Origin: Selaginella moellendorffii
Lineage: Eukaryota; Plantae; Lycopodiophyta
Direction: 5' to 3'
DNA length: 18,961 bases
Assembly: GCF_000143415.4 (NCBI RefSeq)
Contig: NW_003314514.1
Coordinates: 1-18,961, forward strand
Under the pieces are notes generated by a model. The model saw nothing but the letters and a program-made list of their open reading frames with translations, made no database searches and had not been told where the DNA came from. This document shows positions 2,902 through 18,961 of this stretch, piece after piece; position 1 is the first letter of the stretch, and the number at the start of each line of letters is the position of its first letter. The position numbers were made by a program, and so were the translations under genes.

Positions 2902-3525
2902 GATTTTCTTTTTATTTTGCTTTACAGAGTAAAGTCATATACCTAGATATCTAAATATATTCTTGGATATTCTCTAATCTAAGGGCTCTTAAACTTTCTC
3001 TAATTAACTTGTAATCAGTGTCAAAGTTAATTGTCTAACTTATCTTTCTTTCTATAATTTTGCAGACTCGTCAAAAAGGTACTCGGCATTCCTGTAGGAA
3101 AACGTTTCCCTGTAAAAAGGTCAACCGGTCAAAGGTGCGAATATTCTTTCTACAAAAATCAACAATCCCGCCATTTTCTTCATCGCATCTCCCGAGAATT
3201 GGGATAGCTCTCCAGCTTCCACTCGATCTCTGCCCACTTGAGGTGAGATGCATGGACCCTACAAGAAGCCAGCCGTGGACACCACGCTGTTGCATCTCCC
3301 GTCAATGTGCTGTTTACCAATCCTGTTCCTTGAACCGAACCTGACTACAAGAATGTCGGAAGCCCTTGAGTTGTTCAGCAACCTTGATCGAGAACAACTC
3401 GGCCTGGCAGAAATGCAATGAACTGGCAACGAATTCATATTTCTGAATCGAAATCAGCATGCTGAAAAAGACCAAGACTGCAAAGATGACAAAAAGGAGC
3501 AAGTAAATCTAAACAACTACAACGA

Positions 3526-4941
3526 TCAGCTGCAAACAGACATGTTAGAAGCCAAGCAGAGAATCAGAGTAATGAAAGAAACTCACCAAACAGATTGCCA
3601 GGCAGGATCGCAGAGGATGTCGCGCGCGGATGGACGCTGGTCGCGTCTTGCTGCGACCAGCTCCAACACCTTGGGCGCAATTGATGGGTGTTGGTACGCC
3701 CAGTCTGCTGGTAAAACGCCATCCCGGACGTCAATCAATACCGACTCCCTTTCCTACACAGATTCACCAAACTAAGCAAGCACGTTGCACAAACTGCAGC
3801 CAAACCTGGTCCGGGGGACACCTCCAATGAAGTTCGAAGAGTATAACTCCAAGCGCAAGCATGTCAGTGTAGGTTGAGTTGCTCCGGCGCTGGGGAGAGT
3901 AGTAAACTGCTCTCCCCTTCTTGATATTTTCGGTCTCGAGCATGGACTCCTTATTTTTAGCTGTAAGCCAACAAATGAGAGATGGAAGAGATGTTTCATT
4001 TGCCTACCAAGACCGAAATCTCCCAGCTTGATGCGTCCATCGTCTGTGACGAAGATGTTGTGTGGTGCTATATCCCGATGAACACCCACGTTGTCGTGCA
4101 CATGCGCCACAGCTTGAAGAAGCTGCCTAAACGCATCTGCAGGTGGTGACTCACCGCCGAGGAGCACCGACTGGAGCGAGCGGCCACAAAACTCCATGAC
4201 AATGTACACTTTCGACTTGCCCGGCTCGCCTTCCTCCTTCCACATGTCGAAGTATTTGACTATGTTGGGGTGTTCGCAGCGCTGGAGCATCTCTCCCTCC
4301 TTGAAGACGAGCGCGACATCCTGGTCTCTGGACTTCGTTGCTGTGCGAACCTTGATGACTTTGATGGCGTAGATTTGTTCGTCCTCCTTGCTACGGCACT
4401 TGTATACTTTCCCGGACGCCCCCTGGCCAACACAAGCGAGCACTTCGTAGCTGCTGCAGAAGCGGCCTGGACAAGAGAGACAAGGGGCCACTCAGAAGCG
4501 AAAAGATGCCAAAGAGACAAATTATTGTATCCACCTGCTGCTGCAACTGGAGTCTCCCCTCCCTTTTGGATCGATTCCACGATCCCGGTCACAACATTCG
4601 CCGAGAGCATCTTGAATCTCTCCAAGCGTTGCGCCATTGCGAGGAATTGCCGAACATATTCTGCAAGTCATGAATCAAACCAGCAAAGAGTCGTGTCAGC
4701 CAACAAAAGGAATTCCTCGTACCAGCGTCAGGAGCAGCCTGCAACGCGGATGCATCATGATCAGTTTCTCCTGCTCCTGCTTCAACGAGGATCTTCATCA
4801 GACAAGTGCAGATGTTTCAAGTTTTGACCAACCTGATCGAGCTCGGTTAATCGGATCCAGTGGGCGGGTCCTTTCGAGCATGACGTCGGATCGCTTCTGA
4901 GTGTGTAGTTTCTTCGGACCAGCAGCTCTCTTCCTCTCCAT
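3526..4941 (-). CDS. Spliced Ser/Thr protein kinase, compact eIF2alpha-kinase (GCN2/PEK)-like, ~357 aa. Predicted coding exons: 4941-4833, 4776-4723, 4660-4535, 4466-4008, 3960-3806, 3753-3587, 3529-3526 (or stop at 3585-3583 if the last intron is retained)
   Basis: Six GT-AG introns of 47-68 bp with consistent phases give one open frame. Motifs: RFCSSYEVLACVGQGASGKV, YAIK, HPNIVKYFDMWKE, VYIVMEFC, HRDIAPHNIF, KLGDFGLA, GRAVYYSPQ, DMLALGVILFEL, ERESVLIDVRDGVLPADW, RPSARDIL. The N-terminal exons are less certain than the kinase domain. Confidence 0.85.
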
Positions 4942-5143
4942 GGTGGACTCTGGTCAGTGTTAACATTGTGAGTCGTTGCTGAAAGCACAAAAGAGATTGA
5001 GGAGTCGTTACTGCACTTATCCAACGGCTGGAGCCTAGAATGCGCACATCAGCTGTCCGTCAATGGATTCACAACAAACTTGCTACAATTGCATGCTCCT
5101 TCCGCCTCGCCAACAGTAGGCCGCAAACCAGCAGCGCACTCAC

Positions 5144-5361
5144 CTCTGCCCTTGCCAGACGATCACGGCAGCCCTAGATTTGGAATCTAAGCTGCATTGA
5201 GGATCGACGCGCTCCTCCGGCTCCCTTGGGCTTTGCCAATAGTAGGGTACAAGAATACAAAAGGCCACGTCGGATAGAGTTTAGGGCAGACGTGGCACCT
5301 TTGGTCACCTTTTGTGGCCCTTCTTCATTTCCACGGAATACGAGTCATTTTTTAGGGTATC
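5144..5361. promoter_or_regulatory. Candidate shared bidirectional promoter and kinase 5'-UTR exon; inverted pair of ABRE/G-box-like motifs and a CCAAT box
   Basis: Minus-strand AG|GTGAGT donor at 5143 implies a kinase 5'-UTR exon upstream, with a likely acceptor at 4979. GCCACGTC at 5264-5271 and GACGTGGC at 5289-5296; CCAAT at 5236-5240. Confidence 0.45.
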
Positions 5362-5949
5362 ATGAAGAAGACACTCATTCTCGATCTAGACAATACACTG
5401 GTATACGCTCATAAGGATCTCGTCTCTTCTGTAGATTTCAGCATGGAATTCGACGATGATGCACCACTCCACATGATGAAGAGACCAGGAGTAGATGAAT
5501 TTCTGGGGAAGGTTTCAAAAGTGTACGATATCGTGGTGTTTAGTGCCGCCCAGGAGAAGTATGTCAACCTTGTGGTTGACCATCTGGATCCTACTGGGGG
5601 GCTTGTGTCGAGGAGGCTACATGGTGGCAATTGCGTTGTTCTAAAGGACGGGACGAAAGTCAAGAATCTTGACCATGTAGGGTTTCGGGATTTCAAGCGG
5701 GTGGTGGCACTGGATGACATTATTGACTTCTACCAAGGTCATCAAGAGAGCGTGGTGGTGGCTCCAAAGTTTGAGGGGTCAAAGGATGACCACTTCTTGG
5801 CAGATGTAACCCCATTCCTTCTTGCGCTGTCAAAGTGTGTGGATTTTACCAAAGTTACCCATCGCTGGAATATTGGACAATGTGTGGAGAAGCAAGGCAA
5901 ATTGTACGTCCTAGATTCATTCGATGATGAATGGGTTGTTTTTAACTGA
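5362..5949 (+). CDS. FCP1/SCP-like (NIF domain, HAD superfamily) CTD small-phosphatase-like protein, 195 aa, intronless
   Basis: KKTLILDLDNTLV (DxDxT motif I), KRPGVDEFL, IVVFSAAQEKYV (motif II), LDP, VKNL (motif III Lys), VVALDD (motif IV), F.GSKDDHFL. ATG start, TGA stop and an AATAAA at ~5964. Confidence 0.92.
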   Translation: MKKTLILDLDNTLVYAHKDLVSSVDFSMEFDDDAPLHMMKRPGVDEFLGKVSKVYDIVVFSAAQEKYVNLVVDHLDPTGGLVSRRLHGGNCVVLKDGTKVKNLDHVGFRDFKRVVALDDIIDFYQGHQESVVVAPKFEGSKDDHFLADVTPFLLALSKCVDFTKVTHRWNIGQCVEKQGKLYVLDSFDDEWVVFN

Positions 5950-6342
5950 TTATTGTATTTTGTAATAAATGTTATAATTTTTCTGCCAAAGTGTAGTTTA
6001 TGCAAATGAATCTTAGTGAACTTTTGAGCTCAGGATTTCCTACATGTCTCATGTAAAACAAAATGGCAAAACAAGAAAAACAGCACACCAAATTTTCAAG
6101 CTCTTTTGCCAAGGAAATCTCCTTTACATTGAGAGCCCACAGCTTTGCAACACCCCATGAACACCAATAGGAGCACGTGCCCACCTCAAACAACAAGCTA
6201 GACTTCAAAAAGGACATCACTGATCCAACATTTGATGCCGGAGGATAAGATGCTTAGAAGACTGATTGCTTCTGAGTTCTTTTATGTCTGTTGTTTAGTG
6301 CCTACAAAAATGTGATGATCCATATGAAGCTCTTCACAGGAT

Positions 6343-6346
<4 letters not shown>

Positions 6347-6390
<44 letters not shown>
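6347..6390 (+). repeat. (GA)22 microsatellite
   Basis: Perfect GA dinucleotide run. Confidence 0.97.
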
Positions 6391-6397
<7 letters not shown>

Positions 6398-6490
6398 TAG
6401 AGATGTCTTTGCCATGACTTCCAGCGAAGTAGCAAGAGGAGTGATCGCAGTGCCTCCTGCAGGCATCGATAGAGCTCGATCGCAGCGGGG

Positions 6491-6590
6491 NNNNNNNNNN
6501 NNNNNNNNNNNNNNNNNNNNNNNNNNNNNNNNNNNNNNNNNNNNNNNNNNNNNNNNNNNNNNNNNNNNNNNNNNNNNNNNNNNNNNNNNN
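6491..6590. other. Assembly gap (100 N placeholder)
   Basis: Exactly 100 Ns. Confidence 0.99.
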
Positions 6591-7176
6591 TTCTGGTGCA
6601 AGCAGCCAGCATCGCGCTCCAGGCGACTATCGTCTTGCGCGGCATGTCATCAAAGACCTTCCGCGCGTCTGCCAGGCTGCCGCATTTCCCATACATGGTT
6701 AAGAGGGCGCAGCACACGACTGGATTGCTCGCGATCGCGGGTGGCGCGGCGACGATCTGGGCGTGGATCCGGATGCCCGACTGGAGATCGGGGCAATTGG
6801 CGCAGGCGGCGAGCGCGGCGACGAACGAGATGTGGGTGGGGCGGACGACTGAATCGCTGGCGAGGGCGAGGAAGAGATGAATCGCTTGCGCGCTCTGGCC
6901 GTTTGCGCAGAGCGTCGAGATCATGATGTTACAGGAGAAGGCGTTCTTGTGGACGAGATCGTGGAAGACGGACCATGCGTCCGGGAGGCTGGAGCACTTG
7001 CCATACATGAGGATGAGGAGATTGCTGAACAAGGGGTGGTGGCGTAGGTCGAGGGTGGCGGCCAGGCGGCGGTGCAAGAGCTTCCCTCGCGGGAGGGACT
7101 TGGAATCACCACATTGGTGCAGAAGAGTCGCGATTTGGCGTGGAGCCAGCTCCGGGATGCCGGCATCGGCGCGGAC

Positions 7177-7443
7177 TGGAACACTGCGATTGCCGCAAAT
7201 GCCCATAATGGGCAGTTTAGAGCGGCGATTGTGCTGCTTTGGAAGTTGGATCTGGAAGGGATCGGACCTGATATGGTGACGCTGACTGAGATCCTGGCAG
7301 CGTGTTCTTGGAAGCAGGATAAAGCACAGGGTATAAAGATCACGAGTGTACTTGCTCGTGTGGCTGGGAGCGTAATGTTGTCGCTGGAACCTCTATCGTC
7401 AACATGTATGGAAAGTGTGGCAGAATCAAGGAAGCATCAAGGA
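7177..7443 (+). pseudogene. Second PLS-class PPR fragment, opposite strand, frameshifted
   Basis: WNTAIAANAHNGQFRAAIVLLWKLDLEGIGPDMVTLTEILAACS...GIKI, then after a 1-nt frameshift near 7341, ECTCSCGWERNVVAGTSIVNMYGKCGRIKEA. Confidence 0.8.
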
Positions 7444-7775
7444 AGGAAGCAAGAATCTAAAATTATTTTTTGTTTATCATGGCCTTTATAAAAAAAATTA
7501 AAATATTTTTCTTTTCATAATTTATATACCTTTATTTATATGTTGTTACATTTTATGCCAAGTTTCATATCATCAAATAGATAATGGCTGAAGAACTAGT
7601 TTATAACTTGCACATAAAGATAGAAAATTATTTACTGGACAATAATATTTATATTCAAAAGTTAATTCAAATTTGTAAAACAACTAACCAGAATTATCTT
7701 GATTCTTTATTTATTTAAAAACTTCCAAATTCATTTTGTTTATATCTTGGCTTACTATTAATTGAAATATAGAAA

Positions 7776-8093: not shown

Positions 8094-9600
8094 TGTTTGA
8101 TTATTCTTGAAAAGTGCTTAGATTTGGGATTTTGGTTTAGATTTAGCTTTTGCATTGTCTAAATTTAGCTTTTTCCATTTCTTTCTTTTATTCTTTCCTT
8201 TTGGGATTTTGGTTTAGATTTAGCTTTTGCATTATCTATATCTCCATTTCCTTCTAATTTTTTTTTATTTCATTTCTTTTGCTCTTTCTTTTCCATTCAT
8301 CTTTATGGTAGAGCAATAATCTCCTCCTCCTTTGACTTTGGAGTAGCATTTTGTACAATTGCTTGATGCTATGTGATTGCAGTTGAACAACCAAACTCAG
8401 TTGATGGCAGTATTCACAACACATGGTAGAACTCTTATTGCTCTTGGTGCCAATCCTCATGTTCAACTAGAGTTCTTTTATGGGAATCTTTAGGGACAAT
8501 GTGTACTATTGGTTCAATCACTTCATAGTGATTGCCATATATCATTCTTGGGATGATACTTGATGTTTGTGTGAGTTTCCCACGTGTTTCCAAGGGATGG
8601 CGCTGTAGTGGTATAATGGTTTGAATATAGCTATTCATGGGGATTAGAGTATTCTTTGAGACGTCTTCAAACACACATTTGGATATGTCAATAATTGTGA
8701 TGATACTTTCCAACAATTGCATCGTCTTTGTTAAGGACCATCTAAATTGGTGATTCAATTTAGCATTTGTTTTCATAGCCTTTTGCTTCATGCGGAGCTA
8801 AATATGTTGGAGCGGATCAAACTAGGAATGTTGTGGCCAATACTTCGTCAAAGTTTTGTAGGACTTGTGCATGCACTTGCTCCAACAACCTCTAACAATG
8901 CTTTTTGTTTGGCACAACATTATGAGACATTGCTTTTTCCACTTCTCGCTACACATATTTTAGCTCCACTTTCTGTGGGAGATGGTTTTGTTTCAATGGA
9001 GGTTGATGTTACTGCTGCTCAGGTTTAAGGACAAGGGTGAGGATGTGGTTATAGTTGTGATATTTGCTACTGAGCATGTAATGAAGTTGGTCACACTTAT
9101 CAGTATTGTTAGTGTTTTCCGGATTGGTAGCTTCCATTTCTTGGGTGGAGACCTTGGCATCAACAATGTCTTGTTGGTATTGTTGCAGTGAAAGGTCTAA
9201 ACATCGAGATGCATCCAGGACATGAGGAGTCATGTGAGTAATGGAGGGACCTTGCACGAATAAGTCAATGACCCCTTCATCTTTCTTTTAGAAGTATCAT
9301 CAAAAGGTTCATTCGGCATCAGTTCATCAAGTGTTTGTTTTCCAAGCTTGTTTTTATAACAAAAGGTCTTTTATTATTCTCTTTGTATCGATTCATACAT
9401 GTTCAAGTTTATCTTCTATTGCTTGACTTGTTACCATATATTACCACCTACATTTGCGTCATGCGGCAGAGTTAGTTTTCATTCTTTATGGCAACGACCA
9501 TACATATGCATATGCACAGGATGAAGTGAACCTAATTGTGTATATAGGTGATCTTGAACTTGGACTGCAGTCATTGCCAGTGGTGCCAAGTTAAGCTTTT
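8094..9600 (-). mobile_element. Probable nested minus-strand LTR-element remnant (3' LTR ~8094-8318, PPT ~8320-8333, decayed internal region)
   Basis: Minus strand reads aaaggaggaggaga-t-tattg...aaca, i.e. a PPT followed by a decayed TG...CA segment with an internal 34-bp duplication. The upstream region is coding-like but stop-ridden with no domain I recognise. The far boundary is approximate. Confidence 0.45.
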
Positions 9601-9789
9601 GACCTCATCCTTAGTATAGGCGCAATCATGCTAAATGTGACTTTGAGGCTTCTTCCCCTTGTCTCATACTTCCTTATATTTTATCCATTCTTTTCACTTC
9701 GAAACATGTTTGTCCCTTTGCTTCTACTTCTACTTTCATTACTTTTGTCTCCCCATTATTTCCTTTTATGTTTCCGTTTTGTTCTGCTT

Positions 9790-12560
9790 TTTATTTTTTC
9801 AATCTCTTAGTTGACAAGCTCATGAAGGAGTATGCCAATCTCTTTGAGTTTCACCTATCGTCTGGGGCCAAGATTGCTATATGTCATCTGATTCCAACCA
9901 GGGATCCTCATCCCATCAAAGTTTCTGTTCATCATCAATCACCCAAAGAGATCAAGATTTTACATGCAAACATCAAGGAGATGTTGGAAAAGGGTGTTAT
10001 TTAAAAGTCACGGAGTCCTTAGGCATATGAACCTCATCTTGTGACGAAGCCTAATGCGAGTATTCATTTCTATATCGATTATCATTCGTTAAACAAAATG
10101 ATGATCTTAGATGTGTATCCTCTTACTCACCTGTTGATTTCTTAGATCATCTAAAAAGAAGTTGTTAGTTCACTAAGTTAGATCTTGCTTCTGGGTACTC
10201 GCAAATACTAATGGGCGAAGAAGATATTCCTAAGAATACTTTTTATACACCATTTAGTTTGTATGAGGTTTTGGTGATTCTGTTTGGTTTGAACAATGCT
10301 TTAGCATTTTTCCAACAAATGATGGATGGGGTTCTTTGTGATATGCTAAAGGTAATTACTAACTTCATTAGTGTTGTTTTGATCCACTCGTAGGGGATGG
10401 GGGAGGAATATATGTTTGTAAAGTGTTAAATCAATTATGGGAAGTTGGTTTAAAGTTGAAGTGGTCGAAGTGTGTATTTGACTCTAATGACACGACTTAT
10501 CTTGAGTACCGTATTTTTCATGAGGGTTTGCAAGTTAATCTTGACAAGCTTGTGGCTATTTTAATGTTCCCTACTCCAAAGTGTGTAAATGATATGTAGT
10601 GCTTCCTGGGTAAAGTGTAGTATCTCAGTTATTTTGGGGATCATCTTTTTTATCACATTGCACTGTTGCAAGTGCTGTCAAAGTCATCAACATCATCTTT
10701 CATCTAGTCTGTGGATTGTGAGTAGGCATTCATGGATTTCAAAAAGCTATTGACGACTCTTCTGGTTTTGGTGTATCCTAACTACACTCAACCTTTCATT
10801 TTGCACATAAATGCTTCTGATATTGGTCTTGGAGGTGTATTGATGCAAAAGAGCTTGAGTGTGTCTAGTTAGCGCCATCCCATTGCATATATAAGACGTA
10901 TATTACAACTAGCAGAAGAAAACTATTTCACGACAGAGATAGAATATTTACTAACAATCTGGGGTTTTGAAAAACTTCATGCATATCTACATGGTTTTTG
11001 GACATTACTGGAAGGTGATGATGCTACCATTACTTCATTATTGAAATGAAAAAACCTGATTGGTCATATTGCTCGGTGGGCTTTGAAGCTTTAGATATAT
11101 AATTTTAATAATGTTCATCACCCAGGGAGTTGCCTTTTCTCGAGCTCCTCTTCCTTATTTGCCCTTTTTTTATGTTTCTAACGAGTGTGTTGTTCTAGCA
11201 TCTGTGGATTTTCTAGACAAGGATTCTGTGTTGTTAGCAGTTGTTGTATTTAATGTTCAATGTCCACAAGGTGTAAAATAGAATTTACCTTCTCTTGATG
11301 AGGTTTGTGAAGCTCAAAAGATTGAGTTATGGATTTGAAGGCTTCGTAATGGGTTTAAAAATTCTACATCACTTGCTAATGACTTCCCTTTCCGGCATTT
11401 ACTTTTTTAATATTATTTTGGAAACAACCTTCTTTATTTTATGGGTACGAATCCTTATGATCATTTATAGTTGGTAGTGCCTTCAATCTTTATTTCATGG
11501 TTCCTCCATGCCTACCATAATTCTCCTATTCTAGGCGGGCATATGGGACATCGTCATGTGACCAAAAAGCTATGTAAGTGTTTTTATTAGCCCGAGATGC
11601 AACGTGATTTTATTCAATATGTGCATAGTTGTGTTTGGTGCTAATCTCATAATACTACCCTTTGTGCTGCAAAAGGATAGTTGGAGTCAATTGCAGTTTC
11701 CCATCCTTTTGAGTTGGTGGCATTTGATCTTATGGGACTTTTTCCATGATTGATTGCTCGTAATGAGTATGTTATTATTACTTTTGACTGTTTAACTTGT
11801 TGGGTGGAAGTTGGTGCTCTTTCTAGCGCCTTTGTAACTATTGTTGAATACTTCCTCCTCAATCAAGTGGTGTTCCAACATTTTTTTCTAGAGCGGATTT
11901 TTTTGGATAATGGTCCCACATTTATCGCTGAGGCATTTTATGTTTTGACGTCTCAGTTAGGGATACGCCATACATTCACACGTGCTTATCATCCACAGTC
12001 AAACAATTTGATAGAACAGCTCATTTAGACATTCAAAAGGATGATCATAAAGCATGTGAATTTTTAGCATTTGGATTGGGATACTTATTTACTGTCTCTT
12101 TGGTATGTAAATGTCACAGGGGTGTAGAGTTTTGTTGGTGCTTCACTATGTAAACTCTTATATGGTCATGATCCAATATTATTAATGGAGTTAGATTTAC
12201 TTTTGTGATTGCCACAAGCTGCCAATGCTAGGTCGTAGGATTAGTATTTGACGGGAATTCTTCCACTTATCCATGCAGAGTCTGCAAAAATCTAGGCCAC
12301 GTACAAGTGGGACAACAATAACACTACAACACCCATCATTGTCCATCTACGGAGTACAAAGTGGATGAATTAGTGTTAGGTTGTTTTCCCCATCTTATGG
12401 TATGTGGTTTATCTAAGGGGCTCTTTGTTCAGTAGAAAGGACCATATCATGTGTTATAGCAAGCTGGACCATAAGTTTATGAGGTTTAGCATGACGTCAA
12501 ACAAGTTAATCCTCCAGAAATTGTGCATGTACAGCGATTGAAACGCTTTGTACAAAGGGA
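9790..12560 (+). pseudogene. Family-Y pol pseudogene: RT, RNase H, integrase (HHCC, core, GPY)
   Basis: KLDLASGYSQILMGEEDIPKNTFYTPFSLYEVLVILFGLNNA; FILHINASDIGLGGVLMQ; YHNSPILGGHMG...C..C; FDLMGLFP; LDNGPTF; RAYHPQSNNLIE; *KGPYHV. Many stops and frameshifts. Confidence 0.9.
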
Positions 12561-12680: not shown

Positions 12681-12856
12681 TGTGAGGTCCAAGTGTACAA
12701 CTATGATGCCATATATTAATATTGGTGTAGTTGGACTTTAGTAGTTGTTAGATTGGTTTCAATTTGGACCACTCACTCCTATATATAAGCTAAGGTTTAT
12801 GGGTTAATTGATATGCATATTTTTTATATTCCCTTTTCATATTCCATGCACTCACA
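12681..12856 (+). repeat. 3' LTR of family Y (176 bp)
   Basis: Follows the PPT, has inverted termini TGTGAG/CTCACA, and is similar to 7776-7929 and 2734-2901. Confidence 0.85.
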
Positions 12857-13599
12857 TATAAATAATTATTCCTTTAATTACAGACTTATTATTTTTCTCC
12901 TTTTTTATGATCATCTTTTAAAGTGCTATCTATAACACCTAAAATATATGTAAATAATAATATTATATAAAACTTTAAAAACAAATTACCTACTTTTTTC
13001 ATCATCTTCATCATCATATGAGATTATATCATTCAAGGTAGCATGTTTATCACCTTAAAATTATAAGTAATAACAATATATGTATAATTATTTATTATTA
13101 GTTACATATATATTTCTCTTTCTCTCTTATAAGTTATTAATTATTATTTTTATTTCTAATCTATTAAATAAGGAAAAATACAGTAACTTAAAAATTAATG
13201 TTTCTTACATCATTATTTATTATATAGTTAGCAATATAATAATAATATTAAATAAATTTTCTCTAAATTATAAATAAATTATAAGAAAATATGTCTCTGA
13301 TATATTATTTTTTAATTATAGTTAATCACTTGGATCCCTTGGAAATGATGAACTTGAAAAGATTACACAATAGCTAGTGCAAAATTAGTTTTATAATCTT
13401 GTAGTAGAGTAACTAATAGAGCAACAATAGTATGCATAGCATTTTTAGGTTACTTTAGAAAATATAGTGTAAAGCATATACCTAAAATATTTAATATATA
13501 ATAAAATATTCCTTATTCTAAGGGTTATAATTTCTTGCTGTTAAACTTTTCTATAATTCATTTTTATCAAGATTTAATTCTAATATTCTTGGCGGATGA

Positions 13600-14839: not shown

Positions 14840-17800
14840 TGTCACTAACCCCAATACTATTTAAACTTAAGGACAATATTTTAAAACCCTTAACTGATTA
14901 AAAAAAAGGGGTGCACTTTTATTTATCCCTTTATATTTGAACTCTATAGATCAATGTCTCAAATCATTCCCTTTGGTTGTTTATAATTCATTATATTTCT
15001 CTATACAGTTGCAACTCTTTTGAAACTGTACAAGTCAAGCCCAACTGGAATAAATTAGACTTGCCAAATGTTAATCTCAACACATGGTATGATTCCTCTA
15101 GCTAACTAAATGTCAAACCCGAGACCCTTTTAATACCAAATGTAAGCTCCTAAATTCAAATTTTTTGGGATGTCGCCCAATTTAGTTTATTCAAACCCAA
15201 GAACACTTAACCCCAAGTATTCCAAGACCTCTAACTGATTAAAAAAAAGGTTGCACTTTTATTTATAGGCCTTTCCCCTTATATTTGAACCTCATATATC
15301 ATCTCTCGAATCAATTAGAAACTAACACACGAATCAATTAGAAACTAACTTGAGACCTTCAATCCCCAAGAAGGCTCATGCAAGTGGTCGTGAGTAAGGA
15401 TAAACTTGATATTACTAGAATACTCCAAGTTGTGAGAAAATAAATGTGCATTGGTGATAAACTGGAATACAATAGAGAAGTGCTAACTTTCCCCCTTAAC
15501 TACTCTTACATGGTGGCAACTACCATTTCTTCATGAGTCATGACTGTCAATTATGGAGCTTTACACTTTCTTTAGAGAGCTGGTCATTGATGTATTGTGT
15601 TTCCACGCATACAATCCTCTAAAAGGACATATCTTTAGAGTTAGGATTTTGCTCTTTGCAATGGAGTGTCAAGTTTGAGTCCCTGTGGTAACTTTCTTGA
15701 GTTTTTTCTTTATTGGTGTGGTAGTGTTGGAGAAGCTTGCTTTGTGTTGGTGTTTGGCATGTTTATTGATGAGTCATAAAAGATTCATTAGTCTCTAAGT
15801 CTTGTTTTTTGTTAAAGTTCTTCAAGTTGTTATTTTTCTTCATGTTGTTTTCTTAAGCTTGATTTTTCTTGGATTTTTGAATTTGAGCTTTATGTTTTTT
15901 GATTGTGTTAAGTTTTTGAGCTTGAACTTTGTAAATCTTAAATATGAATATGTTGAAATCTTGAGTTTGAGTTTTCATAGTCTTGATCTCTTGATCTTCA
16001 TGCCTGTAGTTCTTCTTGATGTTTCATTCTCGATCTTTAAAATTGAAAACCTTCATTTCTTTCAATGTCATTTTTTATGATGTTTGAGTCGTATGATTAA
16101 TATTTCTTGAGCTTGTTAAGGTTGACAGTTTGGAGATGCTCGCCATCGAATGTTACAATTGTTGCCATTCCTGGAGCTTTAAATTTTTGGATGAGGAATG
16201 GTCCTTCCTATCTTGAATTCACTCTCAAACCAATGTTTTCAATATTTCTTAGAAACCAGAGTACTTGATCATTGATCTTGAATTCTTCATTTTTCTTTAA
16301 TCTTCTTTTTTTTGTTATGGTTGGTTTTTCTTCAAGCTTGAATGGCTTCGAGTGTCTAAATTGCTTATAATCTTTCTTCGTTAAGTTTTTTTAGTGTTAC
16401 TAATCTTTTCTTAATTAATTTTTCTTGGTTGATCTTGCAGTGTATTGCCATTCGCAATGAAGAAACAATGTACTTCAATGGTGTTAGGGCTTCTAAGCCA
16501 TAAGCAAGCTTGAATAGTGTCAAATTTGTTGAAACCTTGTATGTTGTTCAATATACCCATAGGGCATTGTAAATGTGATTGTCCCAATCTTTCTAATTTG
16601 TTTTCATTATTTTGTTGAGGATGTTCTTAAGTGTCTTATTTATCAACTCTGCTTAACTGTTGCCTTGAGGGTAATATGGTGTTAAAGTCTTATGTTTGTT
16701 TCGCTTAAAGCTTGTTATGAGTAGTCCTATAATTGAAATAGTTCTAGTGGTGTTGTTGGATGAAGCTCTTGAGTTTGTTTCTTTGGTGTGTACTTGGTTT
16801 GTTGACAAATGTTGCATTCTCAACAAAATTTTGCTAAGTTATGCCAAAGTGTTAGCCACTAGAGTCCTGCTTGCAAAATCTTATGAGCTGTGATTTCTTC
16901 TGTGAAGTGGCCTCTTGCTTGTCCACAGTGGGCTTCTTCAAATAAATCTTGAGTTCTTCAAATTGTACACATCTTCATAGTACATTGTCTTATCCTTTTT
17001 TGTACAATCTTCCTCCCACAACTGAATATGGTCTTGTCCTTAAGACAAATTATTTATGGTGATTAGAGATGGAGTATCGACTTAGTATTATTGTTGTTAT
17101 GAGGTAGTAGTATATGTCATTCGTCCATGTTGATGATGTGTGGATGCAAAGTATGTTGGAGTCAGGAAAGTCATCCATGTTGTATTTTAGTTGTTCACTA
17201 GTTGTAAGGTTGGCTTATACATGTTGTTTGCCAGGTTTGTAAATAATCTTGAAGTTGTATTCTTGAAGTAATAAGAACTATCAGGCAATTCTACGGATGA
17301 AGATGGTCTTGTTGAGGAGGTGTAAAAGTGCTTTGTGGTCAACCATGCTCTTGACTTTAGTGCCGAGTAGGTAGTGTCGAAACTTTTATAGTGCATAGAC
17401 CATTCCTAAAACTTCTTTTTCAATGGTGGTGTAGTTCATCTTAGCTGAGTTGAGTCTTCGGCTCGTATAGTAGATTGGTCGGTCTTTGAGGTCTTGTTGT
17501 GAGAAAGTATTGCTCTGATGGCATAATTAGAGGCATCGATATGTATTGAAGTCTTTGTCCTAGTTTGGTTGGGCGAGTATTGGAGCCCTTGTTAAGGAAT
17601 TCTTGAGCATGTCGAATGCTTGTTGGCAATCTTGAGTCCAGTTGTAAACATGATTTTTCTTCAAAAGATCTATAAAGGGTTTTGCAATCTTCACATAATC
17701 TTTGATGAAGCGTTGATGGTATTTCATTTTGCCGAGGAAGGATCGTAGTCTAGTGGTGTTTGTTGGGTGTTGCATATTGATGATGGCAAGAGTCTTAGCT

Positions 17801-18003
17801 TTGTCAATGAGGATGCCTTTTTTGCAGATGATGTGTCCAAGTAGGATGCCAGATTTGACGAAAAAGGTAGATTTGTCAGGGTTTAAGGTGATGTTGTTCT
17901 CTTGACATTTGATGAAGCATTTCTCAAGATGTTGGGGATGTTATTTTTTGCTGTTAAAGATGCTGAAGTCATCCATAAAAACTCACATGAAGTTGGTGAG
18001 GTA
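14840..18003 (-). mobile_element. 3' half of a degenerate Athila-like Ty3/gypsy element (family X): pol 18003-16097, low-complexity 3' spacer, PPT ~15487-15497, probable LTR beyond
   Basis: VFMDDFS (RT); [33 protein letters not shown] (RNase H); YYPQGNS*AELINK and TLFKLAYG (integrase); SR*EGPFLI...VNLNKLKKY*; PPT aagggggaaag. LTR limits are uncertain. Confidence 0.8.
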
Positions 18004-18961
18004 ATATAGTGCTTTCAATCTTTATTCTACTCTTTCTTTATGCTTACCATGACTCTTCTATTCTAAACAAGTATATTGTACATTATCATGTGACTAAGAA
18101 GCTACACATGTCTTTTTATTAGTCAAAGATGTGATATGATATTATTTGATATATATATATAGCTATGTTTAATGCCAAACTCATAATACTCTTCATGTTA
18201 CAGAAGGACAATTGGAGTTAATTGTAATTTCCCATCCATTTAAGTTGGTGATGTTGATTTGATAGGGCCTTTTTCCATAGTCAATTCATGGCAATGAATA
18301 TATCATTATTGCCTCTAACTACTTGATTCATTGGGTGGAAGCTAGTGCTTTTGTTAGTGCATTTGTGACTATTGTTAAATACTTCTTCCAAAATTGAGTG
18401 GTATTCTAGCATTCATGTTTATAGTAGATTCTCTCAAATAAAGTCTCATATTTATAGTTAAGATATTTCACATTTTAATGTCTTAGGTAAGGATACACAA
18501 CACTTTCACAAGTGCTTATCATTTATGAACCAATGGTTTGGTATAATAGCTTATTCAGACTTTCAAAAGGATGATTAGGATTTAAATTGGGATGATTATT
18601 TGCCACTTCTTTAGTATACATATGGTATAGGGGTACAAAGTTTCATTAGTGCTTCACCATATGAACTTATATATGGTCATGATTTGATATTATCAATGGA
18701 GTTGAATTCACCTTTACAATTGCTATGAACTACCAATGCTAAGTCTTAGAATTAGTGTTTAACGAGCATTTTTCCACTAGTTCAAGTAGCATTTATTAAA
18801 CATTTAGTATAGCACACATGGTTTTCACCCTTTATTCTATAGTGATTTATTATAGAATAACTATGAAGCAGAACCTAAATTTTTTATATGCAACATGTCC
18901 AAGGACAGCGGAGTGGAACCCGAGTTTTAGGGCCTTAAGCCATTAAACAAAGGAATGGAAT
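17484..18961 (+). repeat. Long direct repeat, copy 2 (matches 1-1477)
   Basis: Near-identical to the window start and runs to the last base of the window. Confidence 0.97.
18004..18814 (+). mobile_element. Duplicate of the family-Y integrase fragment at 520-1330
   Basis: Part of the near-identical terminal repeat. Confidence 0.8.

Follow-up and report, generated by a model that had tools for sequence, protein, structure and literature searches.

The gene pair and its structure

Scaffold GL377818.1 of the Selaginella moellendorffii assembly GCA_000143415.2 (18,961 bp; locus L013) makes up, in its entirety, the stretch of DNA analysed here (the window). It carries, head to head, a gene for a protein kinase resembling the eIF2alpha kinases and an open reading frame (ORF) for a small HAD phosphatase of the SCP/NIF type, and the two genes together form the core of a cassette that recurs at other loci of the same assembly. 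The pair lies in an island rich in guanine and cytosine (GC; ~47-52%, roughly 3000-7500) that is set in AT-rich DNA of ~30-38% GC. Four runs of RNA data were used, of which two consist of stranded raw RNA-seq (X21 and X22) and two of RNA-derived contigs (X1 and X10). The features of the pair are the following:

3091-6357, no strand: amplified cassette with the kinase gene, a short divergent intergenic region, the phosphatase ORF and ~400 bp downstream (blastn and MAFFT)
3460-5263, minus strand: kinase transcription unit of 9 exons, 3' end at ~3460-3473 and 5' end at ~5231-5263 (stranded RNA-seq and contigs)
3523-4941, minus strand: kinase coding region, ATG at 4941, 357 amino acids (aa), or 358 aa with an alternative acceptor
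4941-4832, 4775-4723, 4660-4534, 4465-4008, 3960-3805, 3752-3587 and 3529-3523 (stop included), minus strand: kinase coding exons, from RNA joints
4008-4465, minus strand: largest kinase exon, with the G-loop GQGASG, the VAIK Lys (YAIKV), the alpha-C Glu, HRDIAPHN and DFG
4950-5263, minus strand: kinase 5' untranslated region (UTR), comprising exon 5096-~5231/5263, intron 5035-5095, exon 5012/5017-5034 and intron 4950-5011/5016
5264-5361, no strand: divergent intergenic region, ~99-131 bp separating the phosphatase ATG from the start of the kinase transcript
5362-5949, plus strand: SCP/NIF-type HAD phosphatase ORF, intronless and uninterrupted, 195 aa

Eight short introns are spliced in the kinase gene as a whole, and those of the coding region measure 47-68 bp each with GT..AG ends throughout. 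In the RNA, the outer bounds of the first and last coding exons are 4949-4832, which holds the ATG, and 3529 to ~3460. The molecules end at 3473 and in a pile-up at 5225-5231 in the RNA-seq, and the contigs extend to 5263. The 357-aa translation is exactly that of the database protein P0372, and the 358-aa form is P0371/P0007. The exons were joined in local scripts only, for this identity check and for the counts of codon changes given below. At every locus fetched, the NCBI annotation includes the kinase, under the name 'eIF2-alpha kinase-like'; the phosphatase is annotated at some loci only and not in the window.

An initial annotation, made from the letters of the window alone, had placed the kinase on the minus strand with its ATG at 4941 and its gene end at 3526, and the phosphatase on the plus strand with its ATG at 5362, 421 bp from the other start codon. 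These placements are borne out, for the kinase by the RNA joints and the translation. The 5'-UTR donor that it proposed for the kinase at 5143 is not seen in the RNA, and the kinase transcript starts nearer to the phosphatase ATG than then supposed, the donor having been put at ~220 bp from that ATG. The window copy is itself peculiar in this region, as it is without 5 bp (CTCAC, plus strand) at 5095-5096 that are present in the other 12 copies of the cassette. On the minus strand, these 5 bp provide the first intron of the 5' UTR with its GT donor, so that the window copy may not splice it canonically.

Several variants of the transcript were also observed. The 357- and 358-aa forms arise from the use of an acceptor 3 nt upstream at exon 4723-4775, two acceptors (5012 and 5017) are used in the 5' UTR, and the annotated isoform P0006 skips the 53-nt exon. 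In addition, 13 of the 117 X21 reads at 5095-5096 have a 5-base insertion (TTCAC), representing unspliced reads from other copies.

Identity of the two proteins

Homology searches were run with the ORF of the largest kinase exon and with the database proteins P0007 (kinase) and P0001 (phosphatase) as queries. The largest exon matches Pfam Pkinase at 7.7e-36. Among solved structures in the PDB, the best phmmer matches are HRI (1.1e-29), PERK (6.5e-28) and GCN2 (2.6e-26), with PKR at 1.5e-21; NEK1 is found at 3.6e-26, and the margin of the PEK-type matches over NEK1 and Myt1 is small. Vertebrate HRI and oomycete PEK kinases are the best named matches among the 5.8 billion proteins searched, at ~33% identity, and no relative above ~40% identity was found there outside the kinase's own near-identical Selaginella cluster. 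In a quick maximum-likelihood tree of 30 kinases, the protein falls on the eukaryotic side, with an SH-like approximate likelihood-ratio test value (SH-aLRT) of 100 against bacterial serine/threonine kinases, and sits on a branch of 2.5 substitutions within a polytomy, where HRI is nearest by path length only.

The likeness to the PEK eIF2alpha kinases includes the top solved structures and the top named database matches, and it extends to the residues NIF after the catalytic loop, a YxSPx activation segment and a C-lobe signature of the form ER..L..vR.g.lP ... RPSA. There are also differences. Identity is only ~33-36%, and no stress-sensing regulatory domain, be it HisRS-like/RWD, dsRBM, heme-binding or ER-luminal, was found in the 357/358-aa protein, in which Pfam recognizes Pkinase and overlapping kinase models only. 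Two 5' coding-exon ORFs match no Pfam family, and the N-terminus consists of ~95 residues with a basic stretch resembling a nuclear localization signal (residues 3-17), followed by a bare kinase domain. The G-loop, the VAIK Lys, the alpha-C Glu, the HRD Asp and DFG are all present, but the catalytic loop reads HRDIAPHN (residues 227-234), with Ala for the Lys of HRDLKPxN in all 13 copies. The activation loop reads GRAVYYSPQ, as compared with GTKLYMSPE in PERK and GTCLYASPE in HRI, so that Arg (position 267 of P0007) stands at the Thr position and SPQ replaces the APE motif. In PKR and PERK, the activation-loop Thr before YMSPE is the autophosphorylation site needed for the recognition of eIF2alpha. 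By best similarity, the protein can be described as eIF2alpha-kinase-like, its membership in the PEK family being unproven as several defining features are absent. Catalysis is plausible, as predicted from the conserved VAIK Lys, alpha-C Glu, HRD Asp and DFG, and would be non-canonical.

The phosphatase is a minimal member of its family (~190 aa) that consists of a full-length NIF domain (PF03031, 2.4e-36, 125 bits, model positions 1-159 of 160). All four HAD motifs are recognizable, namely DLDNT (motif I, residues 8-12), VVFSAA (II), KVKNL (III) and ALDD (IV). They align with the catalytic positions of human SCP1, the best solved relative (2.3e-20), that is, with the DxDxT aspartates, the motif II Ser/Thr, the motif III Lys and the motif IV Asp. 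The initial annotation, which had called an eIF2alpha-kinase-like kinase and an FCP1/SCP-type phosphatase, was broadly right about the nearest families of both proteins. When 1.84 billion representatives were searched exhaustively with HMMER, the phosphatase's own copies came first and then the Selaginella paralogue P0004, followed by multi-NIF proteins of Cryptomeria japonica and other small SCP-like proteins of Selaginella at 28-40% identity. Compared with SCP1/CTDSP1 and the wider FCP1-homology/NIF family, to which the plant SSP and CPL families belong, the Selaginella protein is distant, its identity to proteins other than its own Selaginella copies being ~30-40%. It further differs in that its ORF has no introns, gave no reads in two RNA-seq runs and is falling into decay in part of the copies, as set out below. 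A literature search on Selaginella eIF2alpha kinases or GCN2 and on SCP-like phosphatases returned nothing on this pair.

The conifer relatives, which are the closest outside Selaginella, have an unusual tandem-NIF architecture. P0217 is a 780-aa single ORF with four NIF stretches (Cryptomeria japonica BSEH01000001.1, L006 10001-12343) and has no called neighbour within 10 kb. Other Cryptomeria proteins, of 535-536 aa, match in two NIF stretches, and several of the gene tags are closely numbered on one chromosome.

Amplification of the cassette

The 3.3-kb cassette was found at 13 distinct loci on 10 scaffolds with 98.4-100% identity, and the two genes stand head to head every time, in agreement with the initial annotation, which had described the pair as part of a repeated unit amplified as a whole. 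The scaffolds include GL377818 (the window), GL377730 with three copies, GL377769 and GL377738 with two copies each, and GL377821, GL377877, GL377619, GL377684 and GL377612 with one copy each. The 13 copies are a lower bound, as protein-cluster membership points to more on further scaffolds; on the other hand, the S. moellendorffii assembly contains both haplotypes, so that the loci per haplotype are fewer. Copies on the same scaffold occur in both orientations, 17-26 kb apart. The left breakpoint at 3091 is unique to the window copy, the other copies having a different left flank in common. All linked copies descend from one arrangement, and copy number is therefore not independent evidence of a coupling between the two genes but has to be counted once.

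The closest diverged paralogue of the phosphatase, P0004 (53-56% identity), is a solo gene beside an asparaginase, with no kinase within 6 kb. For the kinase, no diverged homologue above 40% identity was available for such a comparison among the 5.8 billion proteins.

The multiplicity of the cassette among retroelement remains, together with the lack of introns in the phosphatase, could also be taken to indicate foreign or mobile cargo, such as DNA of giant-virus descent or a unit that a transposon carries and spreads. As a lead only, a feature search of the ESM Atlas gave small NIF proteins of Nucleocytoviricota as the nearest phosphatase clusters (score 0.94-0.95). Against such an origin, which we regard as extremely unlikely, stand the eight short spliced introns of the kinase and the flanks of the copies, which are longer, variable and shared (PPR, 2OG oxygenase) and do not have the fixed termini of an element, the breakpoint at 3091 being specific to one copy. 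A giant-virus origin of the phosphatase in particular was considered and rejected as unsupported: a search of viral contigs returned no relative, the nearest named relatives outside its own copies are plant proteins (Cryptomeria japonica and small Selaginella SCPs), and no kinase or phosphatase is listed among the Selaginella genes resembling those of nucleocytoplasmic large DNA viruses (Maumus et al. 2014, PMC4083422).

Further copies and fragments of the phosphatase were observed around the array. At several loci, a second, partial copy lies ~1.4-1.6 kb beyond the kinase 3' end (L001 1788-2283; L007 3649-4144; L009 9275-9770; L011 9271-9553), which is 93-96% identical and is without nt 341-430 of the query (90 bp). 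The same 90-bp-deleted form is found in an X10 contig (joint 5701>5792) and may thus be transcribed. On GL377684, there is a rearranged phosphatase-only fragment (93%) with DLDNP instead of DLDNT. Finally, L010 contains an older decayed pseudo-cassette and a third, more decayed phosphatase fragment (9169-10596 and 12783-13127). In the pseudo-cassette, a frameshifted phosphatase relic faces a truncated kinase relic with stops. The relics of L010 are the product of repeated rounds of duplication and decay at the array.

Expression

Expression of the two genes is asymmetric. The kinase is covered at 90-236x in X21 and at 20-72x in X22, on one strand only, whereas not a single read of the phosphatase was found in these two runs on either strand across 5280-5963. 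Reads of all copies collapse onto the window, so that expression is pooled over copies; at position 3480, for instance, the allele of the window copy is found in 4 of 26 X21 reads. Since all copies are at least 98% alike, phosphatase reads from any of them would have mapped. The co-expression expected by the initial annotation is therefore absent from X21 and X22.

This sets the pair apart from genes that share a bidirectional promoter. The layout is indeed that of such pairs, being head to head, with the ATG of the partner ~99-131 bp away from where the kinase transcript begins, under 1 kb. Bidirectional gene pairs are, however, typically co-expressed, and here expression is uncorrelated, with 0 reads against ~100-200x. 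The intergenic region itself varies among the 13 copies: five alignment columns show substitutions, and 20 bp are deleted from L010.

Integrity and substitution among the copies

The 13 copies also differ in what they have preserved of the two genes. The kinase coding sequence (CDS) is intact in all 13, and the phosphatase ORF is broken in three, each time beside an intact kinase:

L007: stop at aa 149 after the loss of 1 nt
L009: stop at aa 92 after the loss of 8 nt
L016: ORF match ends after nt 254 and resumes ~5 kb away

The asymmetry extends to the pattern of substitution, here given as variable sites, synonymous and non-synonymous changes, and the ratio of their rates (dN/dS); the counts behind these values are small:

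Kinase CDS: 6/1,077 variable sites (0.56%), 4 synonymous and 2 non-synonymous, dN/dS ~0.15, p=0.028 against neutrality
Phosphatase CDS: 19/588 variable sites (3.2%), 7 synonymous and 11 non-synonymous, dN/dS ~0.44, p=0.08 against neutrality
Non-coding flanks: 29/670 variable sites (4.3%)

Both non-synonymous changes in the kinase are conservative and lie N-terminal of the kinase domain, with none inside it. By its variability, the phosphatase cannot be separated from the flanks (p=0.38), and it lies far above the kinase CDS (Fisher p=5e-5). Thus, the constraint on both genes that would go with the cassette of the initial annotation holds for the kinase and not for the phosphatase, whose ratio cannot be told from neutral.

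As to the type of change, 13 of the 19 phosphatase substitutions are C>T or G>A if the majority allele is taken as ancestral, and several of these lie at CpG sites. This pattern is as expected from deamination in methylated, silenced DNA, although it is suggestive only.

Interpretation

With a probability of roughly 60%, we consider that the pair reflects a young, lineage-specific segmental amplification in which the kinase is maintained and the phosphatase is a neighbour inherited as a passenger. The window holds one of at least 13 copies of the S. moellendorffii unit, whose transcribed and, in this view, selectively maintained gene is the kinase, a stand-alone and atypical PEK/eIF2alpha-kinase-like protein. 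The phosphatase, divergently oriented and with its ATG upstream of the kinase gene at ~100-130 bp from the start of the transcript, would have been carried along with every duplication; it is silent or almost silent in the runs in which the kinase is transcribed, and it changes at the rate of the flanks, with several copies inactivated. The structure of the pair, the copy number and the asymmetries of expression and substitution are observations. From them we infer that the phosphatase is probably a passenger under relaxed constraint on its way to a pseudogene, or at the most an independent gene of narrow expression, and that the kinase does not need it. The initial annotation had read the pair as a co-regulated writer/eraser or toxin/antidote cassette, and had itself named unlinked homologues, absent expression and dN/dS near 1 for either gene as observations that would speak against it. 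Findings of this kind were made for the phosphatase: the zero reads, the flank-rate variation, the three broken ORFs out of 13 and the unlinked P0004 leave the proposed coupling unsupported.

Several observations weigh against the preferred explanation. In 10 of the 13 copies, its ORF is intact and keeps the four HAD motifs, and its dN/dS of ~0.44 is nominally below 1. Low-depth pieces of the phosphatase are found in the contig runs, at 3.8 compared with 9.3 for the kinase in X1 and at 2-3 compared with 6-10 in X10. As these runs contain spliced kinase, they contain RNA, and some expression of the phosphatase in some sample is likely; moreover, the RNA data amount to only four runs of unspecified tissue. 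The pseudo-cassette of L010 keeps the head-to-head layout, which makes the linkage older than the latest burst of amplification. Lastly, the introns in the coding region of the kinase are only 1.2% variable compared with 4.3% in the flanks (p=0.008), and the exons and introns of its 5' UTR are as variable as the flanks (~4%). This suggests that gene conversion or another form of homogenization confined to the coding part of the kinase, and not codon selection alone, may add to its uniformity.

Part of this evidence would fit a phosphatase that is functional but independent and narrowly expressed, its adjacency to the kinase being meaningless and the two being ordinary neighbours duplicated together. 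In favour of this possibility, which is unlikely though it deserves to be kept in mind, are the ORFs that are mostly intact with all HAD motifs, the ratio nominally below 1, the low-depth contigs of X1 and X10, and the existence of similar small NIF phosphatase families in S. moellendorffii and in a conifer. Flank-level variability, three independent disruptions and zero reads in two deep runs argue in the opposite direction. The boundary with the preferred explanation is not sharp, however, since many redundant copies imply weak selection on any one of them, so that an independent gene grades into a passenger.

The same contigs and intact ORFs with complete catalytic motifs could also belong to a functional writer/eraser or toxin/antidote module acting in drive or defence, in which the kinase would act as effector and the phosphatase as its stage- or stimulus-specific antagonist, driven from a shared divergent promoter region. 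To this may be added the tight divergent layout (~99-131 bp), the co-amplification at 13 loci with the layout kept in an older decayed copy, and the nature of the kinase, which is orphan, amplified and fast-diverged, as arms-race genes often are. Such a module is nevertheless quite improbable. The two genes are not co-expressed (0 compared with ~100-200x in two runs), and the kinase is abundant without its supposed antidote. Three of the 13 copies have lost the phosphatase and kept the kinase intact, and the level of variation of the phosphatase is that of non-coding DNA. The linked copies amount to a single observation of one ancestral arrangement, and P0004 is unlinked. In addition, the kinase is without the canonical catalytic-loop Lys and activation-loop Thr, which makes a potent toxicity of the eIF2alpha-kinase type uncertain. 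Toxin-antidote and gamete-killer loci, such as the rice and fungal killer systems that serve here as a comparison only, resemble the pair in that two genes of potentially opposite action are tightly linked and occur in multiple copies within a repeat-rich region. They differ from it in that here the genes are not co-expressed and three of the 13 copies have an intact 'toxin' but no longer an 'antidote', the Selaginella pair being known from sequence and RNA only.

A narrower form of this idea would reconcile the module with the decay of the phosphatase. In a lineage-specific defence or drive module with the PEK-like kinase as effector, the SCP-type phosphatase could be on only at one stage, such as in spores, in the gametophyte or upon infection, and the redundancy of more than 13 copies would explain why single copies of it decay. 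We hold this to be very unlikely.

Under the passenger interpretation of the phosphatase, it is the kinase that is of modest interest, as an orphan, sensor-less, conserved, spliced and well-expressed gene in at least 13 copies in a lycophyte. Plants are not otherwise known to have an eIF2alpha kinase besides GCN2. If the kinase were to phosphorylate eIF2alpha, or to act as a pseudokinase scaffold, it would represent a second PEK-type kinase for land plants.

Sequences surrounding the pair

Other features of the window are the following:

21-1477 and 17505-18961: retroelement-derived repeat with a period of 17,484 bp and 3 mismatches in 1,457 bp, bracketing the gene island
76-291: RT_RNaseH_2 fragment (ORF), a retroelement remain in the AT-rich part
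6334-7206, minus strand: PPR gene fragment (Pfam PPR_2 5.9e-12, PPR 3.5e-11), a neighbour outside the pair
11750-12028: integrase fragment, likewise a retroelement remain in the AT-rich part

The RT_RNaseH, integrase and PPR fragments bear out the initial annotation, which had described decayed transposable elements and gene fragments all around the pair. An assembly gap of 100 N (6491-6590) interrupts the PPR fragment, which adjoins a length-variable (GA)n microsatellite at 6347-6390. Beside the cassette, fragments of PPR and 2OG-Fe(II) oxygenase genes occur in an order that differs between loci, having been shuffled. The direct repeat represents retroelement-internal sequence, one copy at each end of the scaffold, and could correspond either to a tandem 17.5-kb unit or to two young copies of one element.

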